Below are positions 29,894 through 56,029 of a stretch of DNA of 64,000 nucleotides, in pieces. A program made the position numbers and the translations under genes. This stretch comes from Oculina patagonica (lineage: Eukaryota), in assembly GCF_052425735.1 (NCBI RefSeq), contig NC_135759.1, positions 1,860,001-1,924,000 of the forward strand. The letters run 5' to 3'. The number at the start of each line of letters is the position of its first letter. The first letter of the stretch is position 1. The notes under the pieces are model-generated. The model searched no databases. It was not told the origin of the DNA and worked only from the letters and a program-made list of their open reading frames with translations.

Positions 29894-32499
29894 NNNNNNN
29901 NNNNNNNNNNNNNNNNNNNNNNNNNNNNNNNNNNNNNNNNNNNNNNNNNNNNNNNNNNNNNNNNNNNNNNNNNNNNNNNNNNNNNNNNNNNNNNNNNNNN
30001 NNNNNNNNNNNNNNNNNNNNNNNNNTTAGTATCGTTTTTTTCTTCTTCTCCCTTCAGTTCATTTTGTTTTGTTTTCTTGCCGCTTGGCTTGTCTTTTGTC
30101 GTCTTGTCTTGTCTTTCTCTCTTTTTTGCCTCCCCTTATCTTCCAACCACTCAATTCCTAGCTATTCTTCTCTTTCTTCAGTAAGAGAAAACCAACTGCA
30201 CGGAGAGAAAACTTGATCTTATCTCAAAAATGAGTTCTGTGTCTTGATTTATAACGTCCAACTGCAAATTAAAACCATCCATTAGATAGCAGTTAGAACC
30301 TCAAAATCGCCTGATAATATTAATTATTACCTCACTCCCCCCAACCCACGGTACCACGCACTCATCAACCCAAGTGCACGCACGCATGCCCGTGCATGAT
30401 ACTTTAGTAAGCAGTAGAGATCAGAAATATAATGCCAAAAAAATATCAATAAAGACAGACCAAAACGTCAAAAGAAAGCCAAAAGAAAAAAACTTGAAGG
30501 GTAAAGAATAAAAAAAACTGAGTTTAAATGGATTACTTTCTCTTTTTTAACTCGTAGTCTACCGCACATGAAGATAACCTGTTTGAAACAAATTCCTGGG
30601 TAATAAAATGACAAATATGTCAAAATGTTCGCCCCCCTACTTCGAGTTTCGTGCGGATGCCTTTGTAAAGTTGTTAAATTTAGCAGATGCGAGAATCCAC
30701 TGACCACTTACCTCCCCTCCTGCTTTAAAAATTAATTGTTACTTTCGATTGATCCGGCCAAACGGAAAAGTATAATCTATTTTTTTTCTAATCTCAGTAA
30801 TATCTCTAAACTACGTCTGTAATTTTCAATAAGATTTCCCTCTATTAATTAGGACGAGATCTCGTGGTGAATGAACCTTTAAACCCATTTCAAAGAAATT
30901 AAAAGGAAGTGCGGGGAAAGAAATAAAACCTCAGAACTCTTTTAATGCCTTTTTTATATAAACTTATGGATATTTAGCCGTACAATTTTGGTAATGGTGT
31001 CGTAAGTGCTCATTTACAACTGCTATATATTTCTACATTTATATCAAAAGATTTATTACAAGGCTAATAAATGAGTCAAAATTTTAAAAGGAAAAAAAAA
31101 CAATTAAATTAGGTCATCATGTTTAATTTTAGCCTTGTAAAAAACGAACATCATGGGCAATATCAAAAGGTATTTGATTAAAAAAAATGGCTTTCGTAAT
31201 TTCGGCAATTCGGTACGATCCTAGCCATCAGGTCCACAGAATTTTTATCGTTGTGGAATCACTTACGATTTCGTAAATCCCCCAAAGAACATACGTTTTC
31301 AGCACGAAAACGAAGAAAAAATCATTTTCAAAATGTGTTCAAAAGAGAACGGAAATAAACGCCATAATGTATTACGACTAAAAGCCTTAGAGACATTTGC
31401 CACAAAATTGTACATATTACTTCCCAAGTAGCAGATTGAGGCTGTGGTAGTACTGTGAAAAGGGTGAGCAAATGAAACGAAAAATCGTGGTTAAATTCTA
31501 CTCGATAAGAATTGCAAAATATTATAATCCTTTTAAAACTGTAATCTTGTATCTGGAAGATCTGAAGGGGTGCGCAAGAATACAAAAATTGTTTGTAGAA
31601 GTTATACAGTCGAAGGAGATTGAACGCCGGAAATTTGCTGGAATAAACACGCAAACGAAACGCGGGCAACACGCAAAACAAAGAAGGAGCCGAGTCTATT
31701 ATACTCTTGCGGTTTGGCGGTTTAAGCCAATTTTGAGTGTCACTTTGCAGGTTTGTACTATTCTGGCAGTTTACGGTCAAGCAATTATGGCAGTTTTGGT
31801 CTTTAGGAGAAAAGTAAAGCTGTTTACGGTATAGAAAGAAAGAATATGGCGGTTTGCGGAAAGTACGACCTCCTATAATAGACCCTCAAAAAAAGCGTTT
31901 TACTGAAAAATACTCACCACGAATTGGAACTTGTAGAAGACTCAACACGTCCGTGACAGAAATACTATTAGCGACTTGAAGTCTTCCTTTTGGCTTGGAA
32001 GGCTTTTGCGTGCTTACAGGAAAAATTTAGTTCTATAAACACAAATACACTTCCAGTGGCTTTGTCGGAAACTTGAGCAATGTGGGAGAACAGCAGCTGC
32101 GATTGCAAAGACTGTAGTGTTTTATAATCGAGGCTAAACGAAGGCTTAAGGCCTTTTCTTATTACTTTCGTTGCACTTTCTAATTATCAGAATTTATGTC
32201 TTTTGTAATCCACAGAATTGAAAAGCTGTGGCTTTTGATAGGATCACTCAGTGTTTGAGCGATAAATTACTGTAACATGTCAGCTATAGATTAATGTTTA
32301 CCATTTTTGTTGGTCAATGATAAATATTGCCAGATATATTGAGATTATTATCACAATTTGAAATCGAAAAGTTCAACGAAATTTACATTTATTTCTTGCC
32401 TGTAAAGAATCTTTTCTATGTGAATAAATGTAATTACAGAAATCAGACAAACTAAATTTAAGAAATATGAAGTCCAAACAGCTTAAAACTCTTCGGAAA

Positions 32500-35771: not shown

Positions 35772-37293
35772 TTAATACTCTTTATAAATTCCGACGCTGA
35801 CTTATTTGAGCGTAAACAACGCTCATAATGTACTCAAGACGTTTCGACCGAGAATCTTCGGTCTTCTTCGGTTGTTATCATGGCATAAAAAACGGCTTTT
35901 TAACGGTTTCACATTTGTACGCGTGCGCGAGTGACTAATACAAATACACGCGAACGCTGCGCGAGACTATGAACATTATGTAAGTGACTTATATACATCA
36001 GGGATGTCTATGTGTTCATTTCCCGCATTCTGGTCCCTCTGCGAATGCCACGCTTCTAGGAAAAGCCTCTTGTGGTAATCGCCTGCCTTGTCCACCACCG
36101 CTGCATGATTGAAATCCATATCATGGCCAAACGTGTTGGCGTGTTGCGCGATCTTAGAGTTTTTGTCGCAAACACGGACTGCTCTTTGATGTTCTTTAAT
36201 TCGAGTATCTAACGCTCTGTCCGTTTGTCCATAATAGGTAAAATTGCAGTCAAGGCAGTTAACTCTGTAAACTACACATCTAGACTGGAATGCTGTGAGT
36301 TTGTCTTTCGGTCTGGGGAAGCGTGTGCGTAACGTGTTAAGTGGTTTAAAGCCAACTTTGACCCCGTTGTTGCGTAGAACTTTTGAGATTCTTTCAGTTA
36401 CGCCTTTCACGTAGGGTAGAACAACAAACGATGTTGCGGCATCATTTGGAGTGTCGCTGCTGTCTGAGACACGACGATTAGCTTTGCGATGAGAATCACA
36501 ACTCTTGATAAACCGCATTGGATAGTTATTGTTCATCAAGACTTTAACCACATGCTCCTTTTCTTTGCGTTTCCCTGCGCTTGTTGATGGGATATTTTCC
36601 GCTCTCTCAAGGAGTGTATTCACCACTGATCTCTTGTGTTGAGTTGGGTGATGCGAGTTGAAATCTAGATATTTGTCAGTGTGCGTTGGCTTTCGGTAGA
36701 CGTTAACCTGTATGCGCCCGTTCACTCTAGTTGTTGCGGTGTCTAAAAATGAAAGGCCGTCGTCACCTTCGACCTCGCTAGTGAATTGTATGTGCGGGTT
36801 AACAGAGTTAAGGTGGTCATGAAACTCTTGCACATACTCCTTTTTTAGGCATACGTGGCTGTCGTCGACATACCTGTACCACCATCGTGGAGGATGCGGG
36901 GCTGTTGAAATCGCTCGGTCTTCTACAAACTCCATCACTAGATTGGCTATGGTTGCACTAACAGGCGAACCCATACCGCAGCCAAATGTTTGGTGATAAT
37001 GTTCTTGCTCATAGGTGAAAAAAAAACTGTTCCTCAAAACGAACTCTAGCAACCTCATGATATTGCTCACGGAAATGTTCGTGCGTTCCGTTAGAGTTAT
37101 ATCACGCTCCAATCTATCGCGAGTAACTTGTAGGGCCAACTCTACTGGGATTGAGGTAAACAGAGAAACAACATCGAAAGATACCATGACATCATCCTCT
37201 GTAATCACTTGGTTTTTTATCTTCTGGGCAAACGCGGTGCTATTTCTCACTGAGTATCTCTCCTCCAGCAGAGGGGATAAGATAGAAACCAAA
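35772..37293 (-). mobile_element. Penelope-like retroelement, 5'-truncated, left arm (RT + GIY-YIG ORF, 35976 to ~37293)
   Basis: RT motifs SFDVVSLFT, GCGMGSP and YRYVDD; GIY-YIG endonuclease VVYRVNC..C...YYGQT. Reverse complement of 37360-38881. Confidence 0.92.
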
Positions 37294-38881
37294 GGCCCAC
37301 ATACCTCTTCGTCCAATCACCAGCTGTATTAATGCACCAACATACAATTTGTCAAAGCATTTGGTTTCTATCTTATCCCCTCTGCTGGAGGAGAGATACT
37401 CAGTGAGAAATAGCACCGCGTTTGCCCAGAAGATAAAAAACCAAGTGATTACAGAGGATGATGTCATGGTATCTTTCGATGTTGTTTCTCTGTTTACCTC
37501 AATCCCAGTAGAGTTGGCCCTACAAGTTACTCGCGATAGATTGGAGCGTGATATAACTCTAACGGAACGCACGAACATTTCCGTGAGCAATATCATGAGG
37601 TTGCTAGAGTTCGTTTTGAGGAACAGTTTTTTTTTCACCTATGAGCAAGAACATTATCACCAAACATTTGGCTGCGGTATGGGTTCGCCTGTTAGTGCAA
37701 CCATAGCCAATCTAGTGATGGAGTTTGTAGAAGACCGAGCGATTTCAACAGCCCCGCATCCTCCACGATGGTGGTACAGGTATGTCGACGACAGCCACGT
37801 ATGCCTAAAAAAGGAGTATGTGCAAGAGTTTCATGACCACCTTAACTCTGTTAACCCGCACATACAATTCACTAGCGAGGTCGAAGGTGACGACGGCCTT
37901 TCATTTTTAGACACCGCAACAACTAGAGTGAACGGGCGCATACAGGTTAACGTCTACCGAAAGCCAACGCACACTGACAAATATCTAGATTTCAACTCGC
38001 ATCACCCAACTCAACACAAGAGATCAGTGGTGAATACACTCCTTGAGAGAGCGGAAAATATCCCATCAACAAGCGCAGGGAAACGCAAAGAAAAGGAGCA
38101 TGTGGTTAAAGTCTTGATGAACAATAACTATCCAATGCGGTTTATCAAGAGTTGTGATTCTCATCGCAAAGCTAATCGTCGTGTCTCAGACAGCAGCGAC
38201 ACTCCAAATGATGCCGCAACATCGTTTGTTGTTCTACCCTACGTGAAAGGCGTAACTGAAAGAATCTCAAAAGTTCTACGCAACAACGGGGTCAAAGTTG
38301 GCTTTAAACCACTTAACACGTTACGCACACGCTTCCCCAGACCGAAAGACAAACTCACAGCATTCCAGTCTAGATGTGTAGTTTACAGAGTTAACTGCCT
38401 TGACTGCAATTTTACCTATTATGGACAAACGGACAGAGCGTTAGCTACTCGAATTAAAGAACATCAAAGAGCAGTCCGTGTTTGCGACAAAAACTCTAAG
38501 ATCGCGCAACACGCCAACACGTTTGGCCATGATATGGATTTCAATCATGCAGCGGTGGTGGACAAGGCAGGCGATTACCACAAGAGGCTTTTCCTAGAAG
38601 CGTGGCATTCGCAGAGGGACCAGAATGCGGGAAATGAACACATAGACATCCCTGATGTATATAAGTCACTTACATAATGTTCATAGTCTCGCGCAGCGTT
38701 CGCGTGTATTTGTATTAGTCACTCGCGCACGCGTACAAATGTGGAACCGTTAAAAAGCCGTTTTTTATGCCATGATAACAACCGAAGAAGACCGAAGATT
38801 CTCGGTCGAAACGTCTTGAGTACATTATGAGCGTTGTTTACGCTCAAATAAGTCAGCGTCGGAATTTATAAAGAGTATTAA
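37292..38881 (+). mobile_element. Penelope-like retroelement, 5'-truncated, right arm (frame open from ~37292 to 38677)
   Basis: Same RT and GIY-YIG motifs. The 66-bp spacer between the arms continues this frame upstream as KAHIPLRPITSCINAPTYNLSKHL, typical early Penelope RT sequence. Confidence 0.92.
38779..38818 (+). ncRNA. Minimal hammerhead-ribozyme-like motif in the Penelope 3' region (mirror copy on the minus strand at 35835-35874)
   Basis: caa-CCGAAGA-a-GACCGA[agattc]TCGGTC-GAAA-C-GTC-ttg: CUGANGA-like box with U>C, stem II, GAAA box, GUC site and a 3-bp stem I. Penelope pLTRs are known to carry minimal type I hammerheads. Confidence 0.55.
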
Positions 38882-41700: not shown

Positions 41701-42287
41701 ATTCATCTTCGGCATCTTTCTCATCCACCTCTCGTTCTGTCCTGTGTCTGTCATCACACGAAAGAAAAGCTGATTCTCAAAAAATCTGCCACAAAAGGAA
41801 ATTGACCAAAAAAATATGAAAACCATATATCGAAAGTTTCTTATTCTAAAATTTTATCATACGTCTTAATTCAGAGCTACAAAGAAGTTCCTCCTTTTGA
41901 GTTATTGATACTGTTCTTACAGTACCTCTTTCCACTAGCGAAATTTTACAAAATTCCTTCGCGGCGAAAAGGTAGCGCGAATCCAGAACAGACTCCAATC
42001 GAGAGTGGGTTAATTCTAGATTACTATTAATTAACTATTACAACATTCATTTTTAAAATAGTTTCCCAAGCCGACTAAGCTAACTAAACGTCGAGTGTAT
42101 CTTTCAGTAAACAAAACATGCCGTTATGACGCCGGAAATCCAGCTCACGCATACTATACCCCGTGACTCACGCAAACCTCCGACTTACGTGCTACTTCAG
42201 TCATTCCTTTCTAAACATTTTTTTTTACCACCACCGTACCTTTCTACCCAAAAAACTCATGAAACCGCCCGGTTTTAACCTGTTTTA

Positions 42288-42858
42288 AGTAGTATAGGAG
42301 TTGGGGGTACGAGATCATAAAAATTTTTATAATCTCTTACATCCCCAACTCCTATACTACTGCACAGCACTGGATTCAAAAAATAGAATCAAAAATAGAA
42401 TCAAAAAATAGAATCAAACATGGAATCAAAAATGAAATCAAAAATAGAATCAAAAATGGATTCAAATATTGGAATCAAATATTGGATCCAAAACTGAAAT
42501 TCAAACCCTAGAAAACCAAGCCTGTAAAACCAAGCCTGAAAAACCAACCCTAAGTCAACCCTAGGTTCAAAATAAAAAAAACTTCTTATACTCTTTTTCA
42601 AACTTTTTTTATACTGCGTTCGAATGGGATTGTCTTATATGGGTCCACTTGCTACCAAGACTGTACTACATTGCTCACAAAACCATCGTGTATTTCGCAT
42701 ATAACGGGCTTTTGTGCGCCTTATAGCTTTCATTTTGTCTTCTTTGGTAAACCATCTCTGGTATCGGCCATTAACAATATTATCATTCCAAAACATCAAT
42801 TGTTATATATTAATGACACAATATATTAATTTCTTATATCATTAATAGTGCGTTTAAA
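42288..42858 (+). repeat. Left terminal inverted repeat (571 bp)
   Basis: Reverse complement of 58981-59545 apart from a few substitutions, a 7-bp deletion and one extra AAACCAAGCCTG-type unit. Contains a terminal hairpin and AAAAATAGAATC-type repeats. Confidence 0.95.
42609..42796 (-). pseudogene. Frameshifted left-TIR copy of the small zinc-finger ORF
   Basis: Mirror of 59043-59237 but lacking 7 bp (AAAAAAG) between 42667 and 42668. Confidence 0.7.
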
Positions 42859-42872
42859 ATAAACTTTGAAAA

Positions 42873-43139
42873 TCAACCCTTGCAATCAAAATCTGAATAC
42901 AATTTCATCAATTTTTTGATTCCTTCAACTTTATCATTTTTAATCATATCATTTAAATTAAAAACAGTATTACTGTTTGATTTATCTCTGAAATAAACAC
43001 CTTTAAAACAAGGAATAATTTTCCTTAAATCATAATCAATGTCTAATATTAGCAATTTATTTTCATAAATGAAATAAATATTATCATCCGTTTTACCTAA
43101 AATTTTAAAAGGATCAAGCCTCGCTCCATCTTTATCCAT
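42873..43139 (-). CDS. Polinton hypothetical protein (88 aa)
   Basis: ORF with ATG preceded by TAATATATAG, like other starts in the element; no recognisable domain. Confidence 0.55.
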   Translation of the reverse strand: MDKDGARLDPFKILGKTDDNIYFIYENKLLILDIDYDLRKIIPCFKGVYFRDKSNSNTVFNLNDMIKNDKVEGIKKLMKLYSDFDCKG

Positions 43140-43408
43140 CTATATATTAACTTAAGATTTTAATTTTTTAAGTAGAATATTTTTGTATTAAAAATGAAAA
43201 TATGTAAACCAAGCAAAGCAGATTATTTTTGACAATATTTAAAACCAAAATGGAATCAAGTTTGAAAACCAAAATGAAAAAACCAAGCCTTAAAAACCAA
43301 CCCTTGCTAAACCCTTTAATCAAAATAAAAAAATCTCTTATACTCTTTTTAAAATTTTGAATTCAAGGTGCGTTTAAAAATCTCTTATACTAGAAATCAT
43401 AATGAAAA

Positions 43409-46400
43409 TTATTGCTTTATATTATAATACCCGTAAGCATAACTTGTTAAGCCATCATCAAGTATATACCGTTTATCATCAAAACAGCTCAGTGATATTT
43501 TATTAATCTCATAGCTTCCAAGTTGATGGCCTTGACTTCTGATGGTTTTCATAGTATGATGCATCTGTGTTTTATTGAATAAGGTCTCTTTGTAGTTTTC
43601 ATGTGTGATATCTTTTTTGATAACGGATTTCTTGATTCCTTTGGCAGTCTTTCCTACTTGTAGATTGTCTTTAATATAAGAATACATTTTTGATCGCAGA
43701 CCGATGAATTCTAAAATAGGAATAAAAGAAGCTTCATCTTTGAATTTACCAATGACTTTCTTGTTTGTTTTATCAAAGAATGGTGATTTTTCAGGGTAGT
43801 CACTGTTATCGAATTTCTCTTTATCATTAAAAAAGTCTTTATATACATCTTCAGCCTGAATTTCATAAGTTAAACTGTCTGTATCTGTAAATAGTAGTTT
43901 GGCTTTGTTTACATACTTCTTTTTTATGTAGTTATAATGGAAATCATACATTAGTGTTTTGCTTAAATCTAATATAGCCATTCCTACATATGAAGGTCGA
44001 TTGAGGGTTAATGTTTCTTTGATTTTATGGACAGCTACTAAGTTTTCATTAAATATTTTGCTACTGACATATGTTGGTTTTGAAGCTAACTTTAATAATT
44101 TATTTTTATTAGTCACTAACCTAACGTCGACTCGCTTCCTCAAATTCTCCATGGTTTTGCCGTATACTGAATTATTCATCAATTTAAAAAAGTCTTTTTC
44201 AAAAGCGTTTTTAGAATTTTTACGTTTTTTAGTATTGTAATCGATATATTGCTTCAACCATGGGGATTGATTAAATTCTAACACTCGATAGACTTTTGTG
44301 AGCTTTAATCCTAGATCTAAATACAACTGAAGATTCCTGTAATGTAATACATATTTTTCTTTATTGTTTAATGTAGGTATCAGTTTATGTACTAAACCTG
44401 ATGATATATTGTATTTTTTAGCAATGTTTTTGCAATAATCCGATAGCATATCTTTAGTCACCTTAACTTTTTCTGCACCCAATGGGTAGTCATTATGATG
44501 ATTATGCAACTCCTTGGGATATTCAAGATCAACCTCCAGTATCAAGCCTTTTTTACTGTCTTCTTTATACTTGGCCAAGTTTGTTTCATCAATTTGTTTT
44601 TGTGTTAACCATCTAAAGCATCCAGTTGGTAGATATTGACTCATAGCATAACCGTATAAATTATTAGCATCAAGATACATGATATACTTTGAGGGCGCCT
44701 TCTCATCATATTTTTTCATATATTTGTTATTAGCTTTCCCATATCGATGAGCTATATACGATATACCTCCTCTCATTCCTTTTTCGATGAATTGGTACAT
44801 ATCAACGTCAGTCATTAGCTCTAATTTGATATCAGTCATTTTAAGCATAGCATCCCACGATAAACCTGGGCTTGTGAAGTAATGACATGGATCAAGTTTA
44901 TAGTATTCTAGGCATGTTTTTCTAAAGCTTTCAAACACATCTGCTAATAATAAGACATCTGATTTTAAATATAAATCATGGTACTCACCCATATTTTTGA
45001 TCTTAAACGTTTTCCACACATTTTCTGCATGCTTATAGTCTTTGTCTGATATATGCTCATTATTTAATATACTGTAAAATTCTTCTTTAGTTGGTAGCTC
45101 TGCATTAAATTTATCAAAGCTATCCATATAGTCATACGGATATATTCCTTTTCTCGACATAAGATTAAGCTTATCACCCTTAAACATTTTAGAAGTATAT
45201 ATTAATTTTTCTCTCGGCAGATTACTTACTAATTTATCAAGACTGGAACTCATAAACTGGAAACTATCAAGAAATGTTAAATGATTACCGAGCATAAATG
45301 CCATATATTTCTCAATGGTATTGGGTATAGCATTGATATTCATCTCTTTAATCTCTCCTTTTTTATTTTTGTATGTATGATTTTTGACAATAGCACCAAT
45401 CTCTTGCATTATAAAATGACTGTCATAACCTCTGAGATTGTGAAAAATTACAGGTATCTTTATTTAATCTGGTTCTATTCTCAATTTAAGATTACAGTCT
45501 TGGTGTGCTGACCCTCTGTATTTACCAGTAATATGGCAATGATCTCTCACTCGTACATCATCATCATTATACACTTTATCACAGATATGACATACTTTTG
45601 CTTGTTGAAATTCTTCTTCATCATCTTTAGTCATCTTTAATGGTTTGTTGAAATGTTTTTTCATTGTATTTTTACAATATTTAACCTCCCCAAGCATCTT
45701 TTCCATGAATTTGTAAACAGCTTTTTCACCTCTGTAAATTTGTAACGGCCTAGTGTATTTATCATCATAAAAACAAACTACTTTATAACCATAACCACAG
45801 TCTGTATGCCTTTGATAAGCTTGAGTATAGGATTTATCATCTTTAGGCTTGCAACCGGAAATCTTTTCGGTTATAGCTTCGAAATCAGCATATATCACAA
45901 ATGGGACGGCTTGTTGCTTATGAAAGTTGTTGAATTTTAGTATATTATTGTCTTTATCAGGCATTTTAACTGCTTGTGTCCCATTGACTTGAATGCAATT
46001 ATCTTTGTGATCGTTTAATACTCTTTCAGAACTGAAACATTGCAAACAGTGCATACAGAAGTGTTTCCTCTCTTTATGCTTTGTTTTAATTTGGTTATAC
46101 ATGAATTTATTGAAATCCTTTATTAGAACATAATGCTTGTTTCCATTTTCAGTTATCAATAATAAATTCATCTGATTGTCATACTTTTCTTTTGATATAT
46201 AGATGGGATATGTTTGTTTGTTTTCATAACCGAAAACATTAATATTAATCTCATTTTGCTTCTCAATTTTATTGTACTGCTTTATTGCTACTGGGAATTG
46301 AACTCCATCATAATTTAGATTCTCAATGTATGATTTATCAGATTTTTTAATACGTTGAGGATATTTATCTTGAGGATTTATGTGTCTGATATGACACCAT

Positions 46401-47170
46401 CTAAAGCATTCATTGTCTTCATTTTTCATATTAATCAATCCCTTAGCACTATTCCTTAGTTCTTGGGGTAGCTGAATATATGATGAGCCTTTTATTGGTT
46501 CATATTTTACAATATTGATATAATGACCATCAACAGATTGTAATACCCAACCTGAGCCTTCTGATATCCATTGTGCAACAAAATTTAATATTTGTTGTTT
46601 AGATGATTGTAGTGATTCTGCAATCTCCAGATTATTGATGATTGTTTGTGGTTTGCAATTAAAATAAGCTGTTTTATATATTACACCATCGCCAGTCATC
46701 TTTGAAAATGTAACCTTAAGAGTTTCAGCAAATTTGAGTCCTTTCATTGCTGATAGCTCTTTTATGATGTGATTTTCTACAGCTTTTCTTGTGTTTTGAA
46801 GCTGTAATAACGGGTCTTTATTATTTTTTATACCAATTTCAAAAGACTTTGTGTAGCCTTTCATAGCTTTAGCGACTTCCTCTATCTTTGTCCTTGGTAA
46901 TGGTAGTGGGGCTGTTTTTATAGTCCGTGGCATGGGTTTAGGCTTGTAATCATCCCTAAATTCAGGAGGTGGTTGAATGATATTTTCCTCATAATCTTGA
47001 ATCATTTGTTTAACGTTTCGTCTTGGGGTAGGCTTCGGAGGCCGTGGTTTGTATATCCTTGGTTGGTTTGCTTTTAGTGATAATATGAGTTGTATAAGCT
47101 CGATTTTAGATAGTTTGTTGAGATCAAATTCGTCCATATTAATATTGGTTGAGATATTTTTTTGTGTCAT
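43409..47170 (-). pseudogene. polB: Protein-primed family B DNA polymerase (pPolB), ~1253 codons, interrupted by one in-frame TAA at 45464-45466
   Basis: ExoI YADFEA; endonuclease VII-like Zn insert CHIC...RDHCHITGKYRGSAH..CN; ExoII HNLRGYD just after the stop, in the same frame; polymerase motifs LDANNLYG, KLMNNSVYGK and TDTDS. Confidence 0.93.
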
Positions 47171-47353
47171 TTTTTGTACTATATAGAATTACCATTTCTT
47201 TAAGTGTCTATAGTAAAAATTATTTTTGAGATTTTTGGTGCGTTTAAAGATAACCAGAAATAATAATATTTTTGGTCACCAATGCAACAATAAACAGCAA
47301 TTAATATACTGTGCTATACAATATATAATTACATAATTTTGCTTTATATGTTT

Positions 47354-47581
47354 TTATTCATCAGCAGGTATCATTTTAAATCTTTTATCTTCTTCAATGG
47401 CTTTAATAACAGTATTTAAAATATGTTTTTTGGTTTTTAAATGGCTCCACTTACCGGCCAAACAGCTATTATAATCACTTATTTCACAAACCCATGGTTT
47501 ATTGAGCATGTATTTCGTCTTTGATTTAGTAATAGCGTTACGTCTGTCTTCATCATTATCGTATTTAAGATTCCTTCCCAT
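47354..47581 (-). CDS. Small C2H2-like zinc-finger protein, paralogue of the TIR ORF; second Cys missing
   Basis: EDRRNAITKSKTKYMLNKPWVCEI...KWSHLKTKKH aligns by eye with EDKMKAIRRTKARYMQNTRWFCEQC...KWTHIRQSH. Confidence 0.65.
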   Translation of the reverse strand: MGRNLKYDNDEDRRNAITKSKTKYMLNKPWVCEISDYNSCLAGKWSHLKTKKHILNTVIKAIEEDKRFKMIPADE

Positions 47582-47670
47582 TAATATAATACTATATATT
47601 ATTTCTTTATACCAGTTATAGTGCGTTTAGATATAAACAGATAATTATTTTCTTTATTAATATATATAGA

Positions 47671-47919
47671 ATGAGTGATATTACATTAAATATTAAACAC
47701 CTACTTGAAGATCAAAGCTCGAACGATATAGCCTTCATTAATAAAATGTGTTGTATTCAGAGCATCCTTGAAGCTAATATTAGTATTATTAAAATGCTAT
47801 CTTCAGACCTTAACAGCCGATCTGAAATATCAAATGAAGACAAAAATCATGCATGTTTAGAGTGTATACCTGAAGACCAGAAACGACGACGTGGAAGGCC
47901 TCGTAAGGATCAACGTTAA
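47671..47919 (+). CDS. Small protein with a C-terminal AT-hook
   Basis: RRRGRPRK motif; ATG preceded by TAATATATATAGA. Confidence 0.6.
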   Translation: MSDITLNIKHLLEDQSSNDIAFINKMCCIQSILEANISIIKMLSSDLNSRSEISNEDKNHACLECIPEDQKRRRGRPRKDQR

Positions 47920-48397
47920 ATACATATTTATTCAGTTTACGGTTTTAGCCATAAGTTATAAATGATTAATGACTAAAAGATGGTTCCACAATGTTCTATT
48001 ATGATAACAAAAACATAGCAACGCAACTATTTACTTTTTGATAGCATAAGGAGATTATTGTATGTTTTTTTTAACCAATCAAAAGCTACATATTTTGATT
48101 CACAATTGTGAAAATATTTTGTGAAACTTTATTCATTTTGTGAAATATTTTTGTGAAATATTTTTTTGAAGATGTAAGAACTATAGGGGTTCCCCATGAA
48201 AATAAGTCATCATTACTTTCCAAGGTCATCATGCAGTCGTGTGATTTCTATTGACCAATCATATTTCAACAAGTAAAAAGTTTTTTATATATAAACTTTT
48301 TGAGTAAAATTTACTCAAAAAGTTTACTCAAAAAGTTTATTCTAAAATTTACTGCCAAACACAGCTGTGCCGTGAAGTTATGTGTGTTATATATATA

Positions 48398-48961
48398 ATG
48401 GTTTGTAATTCTGAAATCCACGATGAATTAAAAATTTTAAAAGAACCTATATGCCCTTATTGTGGTCAACTATTAGCAGAAGGTGATAAGGCTGAGTTGG
48501 CTGAGCCATGCTGTAGTAAGCAGGATATGTCAAATCAAAACGGTATAAATGTTTGTATTAATTGCGGTTTGGTTCATGGTTCTATTTATTACAATGAGTA
48601 TTTCGATTTTTACGAGAACATACACAAGATATGGCGTAAAAGCATCTATCATCGTAAATACCACATTGAGGCTGTTTTAAACGATTTATGTATTAAAAAT
48701 GGAGTTCAATTGTCTCATAATCAGCGCGATAAGATTTATAAAGTGTTTCATGAGATCGATACTATTCTTCCATCTATAAATAAAAGAAGAAAGAGGATGA
48801 TCTCAACGAAATATATTATAAGACAGCTGTTTAAAATGCTCGGTATCCCATACAATTTCATCTGTGTTACTAAATCAAAAAAAACACAAGCTTTTAATGA
48901 TAGATATTGGGCTGAAATTTTAGCATTAAAATCGTCCCAGATCGCACGGTTTATTTGGTAA
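48398..48961 (+). CDS. VLTF3-like (poxvirus A2L/NCLDV late transcription factor 3) protein
   Basis: N-terminal Cys clusters (CPYC, CC, CINCG), then YHRKYH, RKRMISTKYIIRQLFKMLG and KSKKTQAFNDRYWAEI, resembling VLTF3 blocks. The likely start is ATG 48398 after TATATATA. Confidence 0.7.
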   Translation: MVCNSEIHDELKILKEPICPYCGQLLAEGDKAELAEPCCSKQDMSNQNGINVCINCGLVHGSIYYNEYFDFYENIHKIWRKSIYHRKYHIEAVLNDLCIKNGVQLSHNQRDKIYKVFHEIDTILPSINKRRKRMISTKYIIRQLFKMLGIPYNFICVTKSKKTQAFNDRYWAEILALKSSQIARFIW

Positions 48962-49439
48962 ATTTATCATCATACTTGAGCAGATACCTATCGATTATTG
49001 GACCGGTATCGCATATGTAGTCGTCAATGCTTTTCATTGTATTTAGGATGCTAGACGGATTATAATCACCACTTCTCATAGCGCCTTTAATAGAGTTCAA
49101 AAGGTGTTGATAGCTTTGGTAAGCATATATGGAGTTATGAATTTTTAGTTCGAGATTCTTATGTATCATCAAAGCCTGAATCAATAATGAAATTGTTGAT
49201 ATTGTGATCAAAGCAATACCACCAGTCGCTATAGAGGAGGCGAATCCGCTTGATGCAAATATGATAGACAATGAATTCCCTAATAATTTCCATTTTTTGA
49301 AACGTTTAACAGCCTGCTTGTAAGCCCAACATTTTCGATGATATGTTTGATAATAAGCTTTCAATTCTATAATTTGGTCTTCAGTAAGTTCGCTTGATAT
49401 ATGGTTCCATGTAAATATGCATTTTCGATGTTTAGTCAT
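48951..49439 (-). CDS. Predicted two-transmembrane protein (162 aa)
   Basis: Hydrophobic hairpin LLGNSLSIIFASSGFASSIATGGIALITISTISLLIQALMI between predicted helical regions. Confidence 0.7.
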   Translation of the reverse strand: MTKHRKCIFTWNHISSELTEDQIIELKAYYQTYHRKCWAYKQAVKRFKKWKLLGNSLSIIFASSGFASSIATGGIALITISTISLLIQALMIHKNLELKIHNSIYAYQSYQHLLNSIKGAMRSGDYNPSSILNTMKSIDDYICDTGPIIDRYLLKYDDKFTK

Positions 49440-49471
49440 ATATATTAGTTATATATGATTTTTTTGTTTTA

Positions 49472-49588
49472 TCATTTTGTCATTTTAGCATTGCGCTTGT
49501 TCTTTATTGTGTAATACAGCTTCCTAATGTTTTGAATTAATCTCTCAATAGAATCAATAATATTGCTAACCAATTTCACTGTTTTCAT
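49472..49588 (-). CDS. Putative 38-aa basic amphipathic peptide, below the ORF-track length cutoff
   Basis: MKTVKLVSNIIDSIERLIQNIRKLYYTIKNKRNAKMTK* fills the intergenic gap and has ATCTAA at about -14. Confidence 0.45.
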   Translation of the reverse strand: MKTVKLVSNIIDSIERLIQNIRKLYYTIKNKRNAKMTK

Positions 49589-49625
49589 ATAAGTGAATTA
49601 GATAAAATCGTTGGAGTTAGATAAT

Positions 49626-51764
49626 TTATTCAAAGAATACATCGTATGTTTTATCTAAAAATTGAATTTTATGATAGATGGGCCCATTTATCGGGTATGT
49701 ATTTTTACTAAAACCGATTCTTTGTACAAAGTAATCTGAAGAAATTTTAATGCTAGATGTATTGATATTAAACCCAGAAAATGTTTGATCAATACTCATA
49801 ACATTATTGCAAACAGCGATTCTAAATTGATCCTGTATCTTTGTATACCAGAGATTCATATATTTACCTATATAACCATCTCTAATTTGCTCTGTATATG
49901 AATCTAGATCATAATCGAGGAATAGCTTATTATGCTCCACTTTAACCCACGGAAAACTAAAGCTATCACCATCGATAAATTCAATTTTAATCCTTTTATT
50001 ATCACTGGGCTTATAGTCATATTTAAATGCCATATATATAGTCCAGTCATTGGATTCAGTGATATTTTCATTTAAATTAATTTCAAAATCATTCATAAAC
50101 CCCATATTTGGATTAAAATCGTCTAACATTTTGGTGTTATTAAATACGAGATTACCAATTAATCCAGAAACAACAGCTCCGTTGCTATCTGACATTATGA
50201 ATTTAGAGGCATCCGTTAGATCGAAATAGTACTCAAATATTTCACTATAAAAACTCTTGGACTGTAATAATTTAATCTGATTTTCAAGAGTTGTTTTGAG
50301 AATATTGATTTGACTTACCAACTGTTTATAATTAACAGCTTGATCATCGGTAGTACCTTCTGCAATACCATGAATGGCTTGTGTTTTCATATCAATTGAT
50401 GCATTGAAAGCTATTCTATCATTTTCAACATAATATAGCTGATCGTATATACTGGGTTCAACATTACTTTCATAATTCTTAATCCCATATATTATAATAT
50501 AAGTTTGCAGTTTTGGTACATACAAGTGTCCTGACTTCATTTTTAAAACGATATCGACATAGAGATAGTTGTTGTTATGTTGTTGATACTTATGAACTTG
50601 AGCTATTGTTCGACTATAACCGTTATAAACTCGTGTAGTTACTTTATTAACAGTATCAATCAATGACACAACACTGATATCAACACTATTCTCATTTATT
50701 TCAACTGGAAAATAGAGTTCAAATGCCATTGTATAATAATTAATTGGTATAGGGTACATGTTGATACCTAATCTGCTTGAGTAGTAATTTTTCGAACTAT
50801 CGAGAAGTAATTTTGTATCTATTACCTTTTTATTGATTTGATGAAGAGGATTTGGATGATGAATTAAATCTCCAAGCTCGATATCATTCTCTTCACTAAG
50901 TTGATTATCACTGTCAATCATTATATTATTGAAAACGTTTCCTTTATCAATAGAGGTAATATGTGAAATGTCAACATACAATTTATTTACACCATCGGTT
51001 CCATATATTGGTTTGCTTAGATTTGTTATGCGATTATCGTTCATATGGAGATTTGCCTGCATCATGTTACTACCGTGAATATTTAGCCTATTTTGTATGC
51101 TCTGAGCTAAGCCATTACCAACGGATTTAGTTAGAAAAGTACTGTCCACATATACCTTCGAAGCCTTACTCTGAATACTGCTGGCTAAAATAGCACCTGT
51201 TTTCTTCGTTAAATATGTATCATCAGCGTACGATTTGTCCGCTTTAAGCGCGTCTCTGGAGTCAATATATTCTTTATTCATTACGTTTGACATATTGCTG
51301 TATCCTTGATCGAAATTCGGAACATTTATTATGCTGTTAAACGTTTGTTCGTCGTTGGTACTTAGATCAGCTTTATCAGCGAGTTTGTTGTTGAGTTCTG
51401 CTTTGACTTTGTTGTCTTCCAACCTCACGTATTCCACATTTGGCAAAGATGTATCGTTATACAAACCGGGATAAAAGGGCTCACTATTGAATATATTACA
51501 CTGGCCCAAATCAAAGTCATTGCCCTTAGCGTCTTTAGTAAGACATTGACGTTTAACGTACCCCTTATTAACTCCAGACGAAAGATCAAGAGCATATGTA
51601 TCGAGATCAGCATCGATAGCTACATCAGCTTGTGTATTTAACCTGAATATCTTTTTGTTATCCATATCGAAATCAGCTCCCAGTTGTTTAAAACCAATTG
51701 CAGGTTTTGCACTTTGAAAATATTTGGTATGCATAAAATCATTTTCGTCATTAATGTACCCCAT
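49626..51764 (-). CDS. Putative trimeric fibre / receptor-binding protein (712 aa)
   Basis: Repeated DM...I..L...D.VN..Y/Q neck-like motifs (e.g. HMNDNRITNLSKPIYGTDGVNKLYVD, DMKTQAIHGIAEGTTDDQAVNYKQL), KADKSYAD/KASKVYVD repeats, a coiled coil and a beta-rich C-terminal domain. Confidence 0.65.
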   Translation of the reverse strand: MGYINDENDFMHTKYFQSAKPAIGFKQLGADFDMDNKKIFRLNTQADVAIDADLDTYALDLSSGVNKGYVKRQCLTKDAKGNDFDLGQCNIFNSEPFYPGLYNDTSLPNVEYVRLEDNKVKAELNNKLADKADLSTNDEQTFNSIINVPNFDQGYSNMSNVMNKEYIDSRDALKADKSYADDTYLTKKTGAILASSIQSKASKVYVDSTFLTKSVGNGLAQSIQNRLNIHGSNMMQANLHMNDNRITNLSKPIYGTDGVNKLYVDISHITSIDKGNVFNNIMIDSDNQLSEENDIELGDLIHHPNPLHQINKKVIDTKLLLDSSKNYYSSRLGINMYPIPINYYTMAFELYFPVEINENSVDISVVSLIDTVNKVTTRVYNGYSRTIAQVHKYQQHNNNYLYVDIVLKMKSGHLYVPKLQTYIIIYGIKNYESNVEPSIYDQLYYVENDRIAFNASIDMKTQAIHGIAEGTTDDQAVNYKQLVSQINILKTTLENQIKLLQSKSFYSEIFEYYFDLTDASKFIMSDSNGAVVSGLIGNLVFNNTKMLDDFNPNMGFMNDFEINLNENITESNDWTIYMAFKYDYKPSDNKRIKIEFIDGDSFSFPWVKVEHNKLFLDYDLDSYTEQIRDGYIGKYMNLWYTKIQDQFRIAVCNNVMSIDQTFSGFNINTSSIKISSDYFVQRIGFSKNTYPINGPIYHKIQFLDKTYDVFFE

Positions 51765-51783
51765 TTTCTGTTAATATGTTAGA

Positions 51784-52419
51784 TTAAATCTTCTCATCGA
51801 AATTTTTTGTTATGAATTTACGTGGTTTATCAATATATAAAAAGCTGAATGGGTCTTTAGTTGCTTGCTCGTATAGCTCTTTTGGAATACTGTTTTCACG
51901 GCATATCAGTGCCCTCTCATTAGCACTTTGGAATTCGTAAATACAGAAATGCGAACAGTTAAGTCTTATGTCTTTTTTCGTTTTAAAATAGCTTTGAGAC
52001 AAATATATCACGCTACAGTTTTTATGTCTCCCTTGTATAAAATAATCGATTAATGGTTTTTGATTTTTATCACAAACATAATCGTCAAATATCACGAGCT
52101 TTTGATTATCATCATTTAGTTTAGAAACAGGAATTATTTGGTCGTTACTAGCTTCAATAATGTTATAACCAGCTTCATCGCTTATTGGTTGGAACACATT
52201 GATAAGATTCTGGTATTTAGACTGGTCTAAATTTTTTGCATATAAATATATTTTATCGAAATATAATAAATTGTAAATCATATGCATTAAAGTATTAGTC
52301 TTTCCCATATTACTCGGAGCGCAAAGTAGCATACGAAAACATTGATTTGGCATGAAATCGTATACTTGTTTAAAGTTCGAGACTATATCGTCTTCAGTGT
52401 CATAATTTGGTATTTTCAT
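51784..52419 (-). CDS. A32/FtsK-HerA-type DNA packaging ATPase
   Basis: Walker A APSNMGKT, Walker B LVIFDD, and QGRHKNCSVIYLSQSYF (Arg finger / sensor Gln region). Confidence 0.93.
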   Translation of the reverse strand: MKIPNYDTEDDIVSNFKQVYDFMPNQCFRMLLCAPSNMGKTNTLMHMIYNLLYFDKIYLYAKNLDQSKYQNLINVFQPISDEAGYNIIEASNDQIIPVSKLNDDNQKLVIFDDYVCDKNQKPLIDYFIQGRHKNCSVIYLSQSYFKTKKDIRLNCSHFCIYEFQSANERALICRENSIPKELYEQATKDPFSFLYIDKPRKFITKNFDEKI

Positions 52420-52443
52420 ATTATATATATCAGTTATATAATA

Positions 52444-52531
52444 TGAAAGACGCCTGAAAGACTAATGAAAGACTGATGAAAGACTTCTGGAAGACTAATG
52501 AAAGACTGATGAAAGACTTCTGGAAGACCGA
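52444..52531. promoter_or_regulatory. 8 x 11-bp tandem array TG(A/G)AAGACNNN in the divergent intergenic region
   Basis: Units start at 52444, 52455, 52466, 52477, 52488, 52499, 52510 and 52521. A regulatory role is inferred from position only. Confidence 0.6.
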
Positions 52532-52556
52532 TAATAATCTACACTAATATATATAA

Positions 52557-53642
52557 ATGAGTCTATTAGCTTGGCAAAAAATTGCTGACCAAAAAGAAGA
52601 AGTTGAGAATCAAATCAAAAATATTAATAATCAAATAATGTCTTCAAAATTGCAAGATGAATTAGGACAAATCAAATTCATAAAAATGTTTAAACCAGTA
52701 ACATCTCGTCTCGACACACAAATTGAAGCAACTAAAAAGTTGGAAAATAAAGGGGTAAAAGAGGGTGATCCTCTTCCAGAATATCCAATTGAACCAGAAG
52801 ATGGGGGTGATGAAATGCCCGATTTTGAACCACCGCCACCAATTAATGAAACTCAAACAGAAGATGAAGATGAATATGAAATGCCCGATTTTGATCCACC
52901 GCCACCCATTGATGAAGCTCAAACAGAAGATGAAGATGAAATGCCCGATTTTGATCCACCACCATCAATAGAACGGAAGAGAAAAGAATGGTCACCTAAC
53001 TCTATCAATAAGAGTAAGCAAAAGGAATTAGATAATGAACGCAAATATCTAGCCGAAGAAAGACGCCGTGTCAATGTTTTGCTTGGGAAATTAAATAAGA
53101 GTGGAAAAAATTATGTTAAAACGGGAAAGTATCGTGGGCTAACATATGATGATCTATTAAAACAATCAGATAATTTTACAAAACAAATTAACAATATTGA
53201 AAACCAGTTGTTATTAACTAAGCAAAAAATACAACGTATGGAGTACAAACGGGTTCCCTTCACATCATTTGATTTACAAGAGAGTTCAAAGAAATTAAAA
53301 AAGACCCCAAAAAGTAAATCTAAAATAAAATCAAAGCCAACTATAGTCAAATCATTATTTGATAAGATAGATGCTATCAGGAAGGACACAGTGCCTGATT
53401 CTGATTCTGATAGAGAAGAAGAGTGGGAAGGTAGTGGACTAGCCCATAATTATAAGGCTATTTATTACAGAGACCCTGAAAAACTTATTGAAAAATTGGA
53501 TATAATTTGTGGAAGCATATCCGCTGGAAATACGAGTTATGAATTAAAAAACCAAGGTCTTACAATAATAGATGAACTGTTAAGAGTGAAAAGAATTACA
53601 AAGCGTCTATATGAAAAAATTTATAACAACTATTTTATCTAA
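52557..53642 (+). CDS. Polinton protein with three acidic/proline repeats (EMPDFxPPP) and a C-terminal AGN-type domain
   Basis: First ORF of the structural block; WEGSGL precedes YYRDPEKLIEKL...SAGNT...IIDELL. Confidence 0.75.
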   Translation: MSLLAWQKIADQKEEVENQIKNINNQIMSSKLQDELGQIKFIKMFKPVTSRLDTQIEATKKLENKGVKEGDPLPEYPIEPEDGGDEMPDFEPPPPINETQTEDEDEYEMPDFDPPPPIDEAQTEDEDEMPDFDPPPSIERKRKEWSPNSINKSKQKELDNERKYLAEERRRVNVLLGKLNKSGKNYVKTGKYRGLTYDDLLKQSDNFTKQINNIENQLLLTKQKIQRMEYKRVPFTSFDLQESSKKLKKTPKSKSKIKSKPTIVKSLFDKIDAIRKDTVPDSDSDREEEWEGSGLAHNYKAIYYRDPEKLIEKLDIICGSISAGNTSYELKNQGLTIIDELLRVKRITKRLYEKIYNNYFI

Positions 53643-53654
53643 ATTAAATATATA

Positions 53655-54422
53655 ATGGAGAAACATTTAATACTTAGTTCATTCAGGGCGAAAAGACAAG
53701 CAAATAATTATAACCAAAAAGCAAATGATTTCACTATTTATCTTGAACAGCCACCTTTTTTGGATCCAAATAAAAATTATGAAATGGCACTGGATGAGAT
53801 TATAACGATGACATATAGTTGGTACAATATCGCATCCTCATTCACTAATACTAAAATAAGATATCGAAAAACCGTTAGTAGTGATACAAGTTTTAAAAAT
53901 ATTGAATTTCCTAATGGAATGTATTCATATACAGACATTGATACTTTTTTAAAAAATACAACTGGTAAAGATGGTGATAATTATCCATTTTCAGTTACGT
54001 TTGATTTATCATTATTTAGAACAATAATAACCATAAAGCCAAATTATGAATTAGATCTATCTGTATCAGACTTTAATTTGATTCTGGGTTTTGAAAAGAA
54101 AATTTTAACTTCAGGGAGTAATATAAGTGACAAAATACCTGATTTAACAAGGAGCGTTGATATGATATGTATTCATTGCGATTTGACTAACAGATCCTTG
54201 ACAGATGAATCCAGAGATGTATTATTTTGTTTTAGTATCATAGCACAAGGCATTCGTAGATCATTCCCTTTCACTCTTCAACCAAGACGACTGAATTTTT
54301 CACCAATTAATAAAAATAGTATTGATTCAATCAGACTATATATAACCGATTCGTATAATCGTCCCATTGATTTAAATGAAATCGATACGGCGTTTCATAT
54401 CGTTATCAAAGAGGTGAATTAA
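53655..54422 (+). CDS. Minor capsid protein (penton, single jelly-roll)
   Basis: 255 aa, beta-rich; YEMAL, GMYS..DI, ILGF, IHCDL and ITD...RPIDLN motifs; lies upstream of the MCP. Confidence 0.8.
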   Translation: MEKHLILSSFRAKRQANNYNQKANDFTIYLEQPPFLDPNKNYEMALDEIITMTYSWYNIASSFTNTKIRYRKTVSSDTSFKNIEFPNGMYSYTDIDTFLKNTTGKDGDNYPFSVTFDLSLFRTIITIKPNYELDLSVSDFNLILGFEKKILTSGSNISDKIPDLTRSVDMICIHCDLTNRSLTDESRDVLFCFSIIAQGIRRSFPFTLQPRRLNFSPINKNSIDSIRLYITDSYNRPIDLNEIDTAFHIVIKEVN

Positions 54423-54441
54423 TCTAAACTAATAATATAAA

Positions 54442-54687
54442 ATGAATCGAGTATACGAATGGTCAAAATTTTATAACCCTAAAAAAGGTTTATATCAATA
54501 TCGCCATAAAGGATCAGGTTTAATAACTAATGATTTATCAAATATCGGACAATATTCTAAAAAAATGATAAAAGATATCAATAAATCACCAATAATCAAA
54601 GCACAAAAGAAAAGTTTAAAAACCGTGTTAAATAGAAGTGAAAAAGCTGGGGATCTTATTTTGAAACGATTAGCACAATTGAAGTAA
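54442..54687 (+). CDS. Small basic putative core protein
   Basis: 81 aa, Lys-rich, YRHKGSGL motif, own TCTA upstream box. Confidence 0.65.
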   Translation: MNRVYEWSKFYNPKKGLYQYRHKGSGLITNDLSNIGQYSKKMIKDINKSPIIKAQKKSLKTVLNRSEKAGDLILKRLAQLK

Positions 54688-54709
54688 ATTATCTAATCTA
54701 ATAATATAA

Positions 54710-55993
54710 ATGAGTTTCAGAAGCATAGAAAATGTTGAAAAAGTTGATTATCTCAGATTCAATCTGCAAACACCCATTATTCAGCCGGCAAATGGCTTAT
54801 ATCAGGAAAAAACAGGGTATATATTCAATATGACCGATCGCTCTTCATGGTTCGATTGGTATAACGGATACTTTATCGTCAAATACAAACTTCAAAAAAA
54901 GGCTGATGGTACAGCTATCGATGCCAATGCTCTACAAACACCTGTGCTAACGTCAACGATAAATGATAGTACAAGTATCATCAATCACATAATGATAACT
55001 TCAGGGGGTAAAAAGCCTTACGATAGTAATAGCCTGCATAAAATCTGTTTCATAAAAGGATTGCTTGAATTTTCTGATGACTATAGCCGTACAGTAGCTA
55101 CCAATTTCAATTGGTATCTCGACGATAGAGCTGTATTAGCGGGCGATTTAAGAACAGCCCCAAAAGTAGGAGCAATTAAAAGAGCTGAATTGTGTTCACA
55201 ATCAAAAGACGTATACGCAATCATTCCGTTAAATAGGTTTTCCATTTTTCAAGAACTACGAGATAAAATGATACCACCTATGCAAATCGAACTAAACATA
55301 ACACTAAATGATGATAGAGAATTTATTTACAGAGTTGGTGGTGCTGAAACACGATATGTGGTTCTAGATTTTCAGTTATGGTTACCACGTTTGAACTTTA
55401 CATCAGCAGGACAAAAATTAGTAAATAATACCTTTTTAAGGCCATCAAAATTTACATATTTAAGAGAGTTCATCAAGCATTCATCACCGACAACGTCAAT
55501 TTCCGGTATATATCAAATTACACCAGCTATTAAAAATGCAAAACATGTTTTTGTATATCTTCAGAGGAACAAGACTAATAATGAATTAGAAAACCCCTTT
55601 ATTTTTGATACTTTTAAAATAAATGCGGGTAATGATGCATGTAAACTTTCTACTTGTCGTTTGCAACTTGGTACTTCGTTTTTTACTCCGGAACTTGAGT
55701 ATGATTGTGATTTTAAACCAAGATTATATAATGACATTCAAGAATATGCATACAGAACCAACGACTACAATACAGGAACTCAGTTAAATTTACAAAATTA
55801 TTCTGAATTATTTCCTGTTATCTATTTCGATTTAAGAAATCATAAGGAATCGGTTACTGATGATCCAAAACAGTTATTGTTTCATTATCGATTAAATGTA
55901 CAAGCTACTGACAATTATATGATTTACGCTGTAGTTCTTTATGAGGAAAGTATCGTAGTTGATAAAATTGGGAATGAACTTATTTTTATGTAA
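54710..55993 (+). CDS. Major capsid protein (double jelly-roll)
   Basis: 427 aa, beta-rich; IPLNRFS.F, LWLPRL, HVFVYLQ, NPFIFD and IYFDL motifs; size and position typical of Polinton MCPs. Confidence 0.85.
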   Translation: MSFRSIENVEKVDYLRFNLQTPIIQPANGLYQEKTGYIFNMTDRSSWFDWYNGYFIVKYKLQKKADGTAIDANALQTPVLTSTINDSTSIINHIMITSGGKKPYDSNSLHKICFIKGLLEFSDDYSRTVATNFNWYLDDRAVLAGDLRTAPKVGAIKRAELCSQSKDVYAIIPLNRFSIFQELRDKMIPPMQIELNITLNDDREFIYRVGGAETRYVVLDFQLWLPRLNFTSAGQKLVNNTFLRPSKFTYLREFIKHSSPTTSISGIYQITPAIKNAKHVFVYLQRNKTNNELENPFIFDTFKINAGNDACKLSTCRLQLGTSFFTPELEYDCDFKPRLYNDIQEYAYRTNDYNTGTQLNLQNYSELFPVIYFDLRNHKESVTDDPKQLLFHYRLNVQATDNYMIYAVVLYEESIVVDKIGNELIFM

Positions 55994-56029
55994 TATTTAA
56001 TCTAACACTATTATATATAGAGCAAGACT

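Follow-up and report, generated by a model that had tools for sequence, protein, structure and literature searches.

We report that each end of a Polinton/Maverick element in the stony coral Oculina patagonica is formed by a near-perfect palindrome of 74 nt, and that this palindrome is an inverted duplication of a terminal module of approximately 35 bp with the canonical copy on the outside. Because several relatives have such a palindrome while many close relatives are without one, it is an optional, lineage-specific add-on and not a parvovirus-style hairpin telomere. As to what it does, we tentatively favour an optional snap-back end in a protein-primed replicon, by analogy with the adenovirus panhandle and the fold-back of Streptomyces telomeres, a reading to which we give somewhat less than an even chance.

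The element spans positions 42288-59545 (17,258 bp) of the window, i.e. of the whole stretch of 64,000 nucleotides that was analysed, and no second Polinton piece was found elsewhere in the window. Its left terminal inverted repeat (TIR; about 570 bp, 42288-42858) is 88-99% complementary to the right TIR (58981-59545; inverted-repeat comparison), and the hexamer GTTTTA stands directly outside both tips as a 6-bp target-site duplication (42282-42287 and 59546-59551). A 10-nt motif, CAGCACTGGA, lies just inside the left palindrome (42365-42374, plus strand) and is mirrored by TCCAGTGCTG just inside the right one (59459-59468, plus strand); subterminal arrays of 12-bp units are located at 42379-42493 (about eight units) and at 59327-59462. 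Since TIRs, the 6-bp duplication and 5'-AG...CT-3' tips are combined with genes predicted to encode a protein-primed family B polymerase (pPolB), a VLTF3-like protein, an A32-like packaging ATPase and an rve integrase, the element is classified on its sequence as a Polinton/Maverick of the adintovirus-like kind, and the Polinton identity proposed in the first-pass annotation is thereby borne out.

The pPolB gene (43409-47170, minus strand), assigned through its identity to the pPolB of the related locus L043, is interrupted once by an in-frame stop, intact relatives being 1202-1295 aa long. Compared with the 1202-aa L043 protein, which carries PF03175, its two pieces show 82% and 75% identity; in the Pfam search this family was not matched directly by the pieces themselves. 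The window pPolB also includes an endonuclease VII-like HNH piece (PF02945, E 6.6e-5) with a score of 23.2 bits, which is below the cut-off of 23.6. Next follow a VLTF3-like zinc-ribbon protein (48380-48961, plus strand; PF04947, E 1e-7), a 712-aa protein with weak fibre-like or decoration-like matches (49626-51764, minus strand), whose relatives show a faint YadA_stalk match, and the A32-like genome-packaging ATPase (51784-52419, minus strand; PF04665, E 4e-11). Four ORFs of 361, 255, 427 and 167 aa (52557-56533, plus strand) presumably constitute a virion module, judged from synteny with L002-L011, and their lengths are kept in the relatives; searches against Pfam, PHROGs and PDB sequences gave no significant family for any of the four, and no capsid or protease family was detected in the element with the same three resources. 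The right part is made up of a 146-aa ORF with a weak match to the DUF5679 zinc ribbon (57008-57448, plus strand) and a 500-aa integrase ORF (57471-58973, plus strand) in which Pfam predicts DUF5679, a parvovirus-VP1-type PLA2-like domain, an rve core (PF00665, E 1.8e-12) and a chromodomain. Among the ORFs of at least 100 aa of the element no HUH nickase (Rep/NS1) or telomere resolvase domain was found, and Pfam scans of its ORFs gave no member of the Tap/Tpg family.

The PLA2-like domain (PF08398) and the DUF5679 zinc ribbon thus share one ORF with the rve integrase and the chromodomain. In L004-L010, L011, L047 and L048 the PLA2-like part and the integrase are two adjacent genes, and the fused form is also present in P0002 and L043. 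A PLA2-like gene has already been described for adintoviruses, and we noticed no mention of the fusion for them in that work (PMC8502044). Outside the element, two reverse-transcriptase ORFs (446 and 442 aa) are arranged head to head at 35976-38677, ~4 kb from the Polinton; their PF00078 scores are just under the cut-off and they are probably remnants of retroelements. Positions 29894-30025 consist of 132 N.

The left palindrome (42288-42361) and the right palindrome (59472-59545), both given for the plus strand, are the outermost portions of the TIRs and abut the target-site duplication. Each begins with AGTAGT and ends with ACTACT; the outer stem of 19 nt pairs perfectly and the inner stem pairs as far as an A/T tip, interrupted by two mismatches and a 2-nt bulge. 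At the left end the outer arm corresponds to ~42288-42324 and the inner inverted copy to ~42325-42361, and at the right end the inner copy is followed by the outer arm, which ends in ACTACT. As single-stranded DNA both are imperfect terminal palindromes that fold stably, with energies of -24.4 kcal/mol at the left end (z -9.5) and of -26.7 kcal/mol at the right end (z -12.3). A chance origin was rejected, with 0 of 200 shuffles matching the palindrome fold and with the 19-mer present four times in the window (in each arm of each end) at an expected count of 0. An assembly artefact is unlikely, because equivalent palindromes together with host flanks are found in independent assemblies. Read from the tip inward, the two ends are identical except for one base in the A/T centre (on the plus strand A5T5 at the left and A4T6 at the right end), and the asymmetric core is therefore oriented alike at both ends. 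These data confirm what the first-pass annotation had read from the letters, namely a nearly fully paired 74-nt hairpin at the left end with a matching structure at the right end, a perfect 19-bp outer stem, an inner stem that reaches the A/T tip despite two mismatches and a 2-nt bulge, and an inverted internal copy of the AGTAGT terminus. Each end has two head-to-head copies of the terminal module.

Relatives were collected as loci around relatives of the integrase and the ATPase, supplemented with a metagenome scan for the terminal 19-20 nt. An exact-protein look-up of the window ATPase returned no recorded copy, and neither the ATPase nor the terminal motif gave a match in IMG/VR; the closest copies of the element are L001 and L049, both from Oculina patagonica. 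About one third of the 31 metagenome matches to the 19-nt terminal pattern were set aside on account of unrelated contexts (L014/16/38, L015/41, L021, L024/25, L026, L031/35 and L034 seem to be chance matches in unrelated sequence). L018 and L037 were rejected as Polinton ends, being solo palindromes in a ~300-bp repeat with no Polinton interior, and were retained solely as extra sequences in the alignment. The degenerate type-A palindromes (see below) of these two loci (L037:385-1120 and L018:369-442) are positioned in the middle of the repeat unit, of which L037 has two copies that are 77% alike; both flanks are conserved in the repeat and a target-site duplication is not visible. They may be solo palindromes, or else Polinton ends may have given rise to a small foldback-type element.

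Many coral Polinton ends, including those of the window, have in common a module of the last ~34-35 nt, here referred to as type A, which ends CCCCAAYTCC(N)TATACTACT and is usually preceded by AAAATGYGC. A second terminal type, type B, is unrelated to type A and ends GTAGTACATTACTACT. In total, a terminal or near-terminal palindrome is present in 6 of 11 lineages that have Polinton genes beside the end, and absent in the other 5. The type-A lineages with a palindrome are the window, L003/L006/L010 (three insertions with differing flanks) and L004/L005 (one insertion), the latter two groups having a terminal palindrome of 70-72 nt on the type-A module. Type-B palindromes are found in all three type-B lineages seen, i.e. 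L011 (58 nt), L049/L001 (62 nt in L049) and L002. At L001:17664-17710 the L049-type palindrome is present minus its outer 17 nt, and this end is thus truncated. In L002 the palindrome starts after the first 6-7 nt and a second palindrome adjoins it. Overall, the palindromes are 56-74 nt long and the fold z of palindromic ends is about -6 to -12. The two adjacent L002 palindromes (11979-12009 and 12021-12056, at one end) give a two-armed fold in which the terminal AGTAGT is unpaired or shut only by a weak 5-bp helix.

The inner copy is absent in the type-A lineages L043, L045, L047 and L048, although the integrases of L047 and L048 are 89% and 87% identical to that of the window. Approximately eight end families from coral metagenomes likewise have the same module and no inner copy, and several of these occur as multiple copies with different flanks. 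L051/L052, which have a third terminal type and an integrase that is 60% identical, are also without a palindrome. In 13 ends lacking the inner copy, folding of the terminal 80 nt does not exceed that of shuffled sequences (z -3.7 to +1.5). The palindrome recurs in related Polintons, with different sequences and some mirrored changes, and it is consequently not a one-off. Absence from relatives, which the first-pass annotation had named as counter-evidence, holds for five of the eleven lineages and not for the other six. In three of the ends without a palindrome (L047:17460-17540, L043:2608-2690 and L048:12100-12193) the subterminal direct-repeat unit CAGCGCAAAA recurs in inverted form as the inner part of the module, TTTTGCGCT, which can form a weak stem with the nearest such repeat (L047, z -3.7).

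Comparison of the two arms shows which copy is canonical. In all five type-A lineages tested the outer arm is closer than the reverse-complemented inner arm to the 13 non-palindromic ends, and the outer 32 nt of L003 are identical to one such end. Between lineages the outer arms are more alike than the inner arms in 10 of 10 pairs, and the type-B ends of L002, L011 and L049 agree in the outer arm but not in the inner one. Since the outer arms agree better with other ends and other lineages than the inner arms do, the conserved terminus is always outermost; it is presumably the working one, and the inner copy would be freer to change. The same orientation was seen in all nine ends in which flip/flop of the mismatched core was looked for, as the first-pass annotation had proposed (both window ends, L003, L006, L010, L004, L049, L001 and L011; a small sample from six lineages, within which L003, L006 and L010 are independent insertions). 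Ends that hairpin transfer never inverts would be expected to keep the canonical arm outermost, as they do here.

There are also signs that the palindrome is not mere debris. When six type-A palindromes were aligned, standard pairs made up 91.7% of the pair cells compared to 86.3% after shuffling (reached in 0 of 500), pair cells changed on both sides numbered 9 with 3.5 expected (again 0 of 500), and pairing fell below 50% when the partners were slid out of register; these statistics rest on few and related sequences, and independent duplication by each lineage of its own module would give the same counts. In L004 an outer-arm substitution (a G>A/C>T pair) and a 1-nt insertion are mirrored in the inner arm. 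The two copies are separated by 0 to about 8 nt, and arm length ranges between about 28 and 37 nt. Counted from the tip, 6 of 7 hairpins, covering both terminal types, have their first imperfection at 8-9 nt (a bulge in L003, L004, L018, L037b and L049, a mismatch in L011), the exception being the window with its 19 perfect pairs, and this recurrence argues against random decay. A strand-asymmetry test, i.e. whether G:T wobbles favour one strand, gave no consistently better-folding strand, and hence no sign of selection on one particular single strand.

For the snap-back end that we tentatively favour, the outer copy of the module would be the working terminus: its 3' end would be joined to the target by the rve integrase, and it would be the template start of protein-primed synthesis, with AGTAGT providing a 3-nt repeat for jump-back after priming. 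The inner inverted copy would make the end self-complementary, so that a single-stranded end, e.g. on the strand displaced in strand-displacement replication, could snap back and rebuild a local duplex terminus. This duplex end could serve the polymerase/terminal-protein complex as a start site, and a snapped-back 3' end could gain a template for restoring eroded terminal bases. Such an end would be optional and lineage-specific, and neither covalently closed nor a self-priming hairpin telomere. All copies examined are integrated. The variable spacer and arm lengths would be tolerable in a hairpin and not in a rigid dimer site, and the occurrence of palindromes on two unrelated terminal sequence types and the mirrored arm changes also speak for a snap-back end. 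On the other hand, L047, L048, L043, L045, L051/52 and the metagenomic end families do without a palindrome, the ~570-bp TIR could already form a panhandle, the faster evolution of the inner arm is also compatible with decay of a useless copy, and the mirrored changes, seen in a small sample of lineages, could stem from independent duplications of different modules. With respect to precedents, Streptomyces has linear replicons whose ends are capped by protein and bear palindromes that fold in the 3' single strand, and a truncated end is repaired there by being extended on a folded-back palindrome (PMC4513846, PMC5449611). Coexistence of protein priming with terminal hairpins is consequently possible, and the contrast that the first-pass annotation drew between protein-primed replicons and those with terminal hairpins is no real dichotomy.

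As the main rival reading, the inner copy could instead be a by-product of copy-back, in which the strand-displacing protein-primed polymerase occasionally switches template at the end and leaves an inverted duplicate of the module; such a duplicate would be harmless because the outer copy stays intact, and would later decay or be lost. We regard this origin as possible, if rather unlikely. It would account for the patchy distribution among close relatives, for the identity of the L003 outer arm with an end that has no inner copy, for the inner arms diverging faster in every pair compared and for the existence of degenerate examples (L037b, z -2.9), and the palindromes on two unrelated terminal types suggest repeated origin. 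It is less easily reconciled with the recurrent imperfection at nt 8-9 in both terminal types and with the presence of a palindrome in every type-B lineage seen. Moreover, the same 1-nt bulge is present in L003, L004 and L018/L037 despite arms that differ greatly, which points to persistence with mirrored changes or to a non-random process.

It is improbable, in our view, that the two inverted copies are paired duplex sites for two protomers, either of the integrase or of the polymerase/terminal-protein complex, without a hairpin ever forming. The strong conservation of the outer module is what one would see in a protein-binding site, the two strands show no consistent difference in folding, and the adjoining subterminal repeat arrays suggest further binding sites. 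However, the inner copy is usually defective 8-9 nt from the tip and many relatives have a single copy of the module, and the idea of paired integrase or terminal-protein sites, also raised in the first-pass annotation, is weakened by the variable distance between the copies (0 to about 8 nt, with arms of about 28 to 37 nt).

Cruciform-assisted excision, where the chromosomal palindrome would extrude and the endonuclease VII-like pPolB domain would cut its base at the element/host boundary, has in our estimation only a slim chance of being right. The A/T-rich centre (A5T5 in the window and in L049), the position of the palindrome exactly at the boundary, the HNH piece in pPolB and the solo palindromes without a Polinton interior in L018/L037 are compatible with it. 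Yet this HNH piece, the Pfam score of which is just under the curated cut-off, is found with a palindrome in L003-L006 and L010 and equally without one in L043, L044/45, L047 and L051/52, and among the relatives compared the palindrome was associated neither with the endonuclease VII-like piece nor with integrase architecture. The piece, taken in the first-pass annotation as a pointer to cruciform resolution, is therefore no evidence for it; furthermore, the L018/L037 solo palindromes have no visible target-site duplication and are located inside a larger repeat of ~300 bp.

A true hairpin telomere, with 3' self-priming as in parvoviruses or covalently closed ends as in poxviruses and asfarviruses, and with nicking and hairpin transfer, would fit the imperfect, terminal and stable window palindrome, and the virophages and Polinton-like viruses with palindromic ends in Halocafeteria have been proposed to use hairpin priming (bioRxiv 10.64898/2026.07.28.741278), but this rolling-hairpin reading and the parvovirus/poxvirus/asfarvirus analogy of the first-pass annotation are disfavoured and very improbable, since the conserved copy is always the outer one, no flip/flop was seen in the nine ends, no nickase or resolvase domain was found in the ORFs screened, a protein-primed polymerase is encoded together with an AGTAGT tip that fits jump-back priming, relatives carry the same module without the inner copy, and the endonuclease VII-like piece occurs with and without palindromes.

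More broadly, there is a small chance that in some animal Polintons protein-primed replication is accompanied by a functional hairpin or cruciform step at the end, be it self-priming, repair on a snapped-back 3' end, or cutting of an extruded palindrome by the HNH piece. If true, such Polintons would be a hybrid of adenovirus-type and parvovirus/poxvirus-type end replication, and their terminal modules would be portable cassettes exchanged between co-resident elements.

Further differences among the relatives concern their ends and neighbouring genes. Over the integrase gene and the inner TIR, the Oculina sibling L049 shares 94-97% identity with the window element, and its last ~250 bp are unrelated to the window (window:59216-59545 compared with L049:13068-13397), with other subterminal repeats and a type-B palindrome instead of type A. 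L051 and L052 have, beyond pPolB, only the last ~30 nt in common. From these comparisons terminal modules seem to have been swapped between close relatives. The reverse complement of TCCAGTGCTG is found at L049:13326-13335, directly against the palindrome and in an orientation opposite to that in the window, and TCCAGTGCTG itself resembles the subterminal repeat unit CCAGCGCAA of L043, L047, L048 and L001. In L007 (1-1742) and L008/L009 (1-1767) a superfamily 1 helicase and a GIY-YIG nuclease gene are positioned in the place of pPolB; these loci are 92-95% identical to the L003 family over the virion module and their opposite end also differs, which looks like replacement of the replication module inside one element family. 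No such palindrome was found at the expected place in these helicase/GIY-YIG variants. A small GTPase gene (GTP_EFTU/Ras-like Pfam matches) at L043:19086-20006, L044:14603-15532 and L047:15219-16154 adjoins the pPolB or the VLTF3-like gene and appears to be cargo. Extra genes between integrase and pPolB are present at L045:2773-3603, L051:11561-13091 and L052:11568-13107, among them a Bro-N domain gene in all three, a weak VRR_NUC match in L045 and an HNH_3 endonuclease gene in L051/L052.

Our data show that pPolB-encoding animal Polintons also have terminal palindromes, a feature whose first report, in July 2026, concerned virophages and Polinton-like viruses of protists. To our knowledge no free genome ends of animal Polintons have been characterised, and their replication and exit from the chromosome are still only a model. 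That the palindromes come and go among close relatives in one orientation, and that a module of ~35 bp acts as if portable, narrows the possible mechanisms; the orientation, the position of the bulge and the solo palindromes are signatures that can be looked for in public long-read data. The earlier report concerns Halocafeteria seosinensis, in which 52-nt palindromes are present at the TIR extremities, beside the duplications, of endogenous virophages and one subtype of Polinton-like virus, mostly together with non-pPolB replication genes, and its authors offer hairpin priming or an accidental origin as explanations (bioRxiv 10.64898/2026.07.28.741278). Full-text literature searches gave no further report of palindromic Polinton termini beyond this preprint. 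Since the palindromes described there are from a protist and mostly non-pPolB, and no other report was found, the animal host, the presence of pPolB, the patchy distribution and the single orientation are what is new here.

Compared with known systems, the Halocafeteria elements are alike in that the palindrome occupies the extremity of the TIR and adjoins the target-site duplication, in having an rve integrase and in belonging to the same virus supergroup. They differ in having a protist host and a preference for non-pPolB replication genes; here the host is a stony coral, pPolB is encoded in the window, L003-L006, L010 and L011, the palindrome is patchy among close relatives and its single orientation argues against hairpin transfer. 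Adintoviruses and animal Polintons as described previously share with the window element pPolB, the rve integrase, the packaging ATPase, the parvovirus-type PLA2-like domain, an integrated state and inverted terminal repeats (PMC8502044); the word hairpin is absent from that paper, and the PLA2-like domain is here part of the integrase ORF.

The hairpins of parvoviruses, poxviruses and asfarviruses are likewise imperfect palindromes at the terminus, comparable in size and containing mismatches or extrahelical bases. Their ends, however, flip and flop and require a nickase or resolvase, whereas here one orientation was seen and no such enzyme was found in the element, and unlike those hairpins the palindrome is optional among the Polinton relatives.

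Adenovirus is a protein-primed replicon with a family B polymerase, in which the displaced strand forms a panhandle and priming proceeds by jump-back on a 3-nt terminal repeat. The window element is alike in its predicted protein-primed family B polymerase and in the short tandem repeat at its tip (AGTAGT), and in both cases complementary ends can restore a duplex origin on displaced strands. In adenovirus it is the far ends that pair together and there is no local terminal palindrome, whereas here the partner lies within 74 nt of the same end; in addition, the window element integrates via an rve integrase, unlike adenovirus. Finally, about 170 nt at the end of Streptomyces replicons are tightly packed with several palindromes whose loops are G:A-closed; these replicons start from internal origins, patch their ends and possess the Tap/Tpg proteins. 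Such packing of the terminal ~170 nt is not seen in the window, and L002 has two adjacent palindromes; the window element has instead one palindrome followed by direct 12-bp repeats, and presumably, unlike the Streptomyces replicons, it replicates from its ends.
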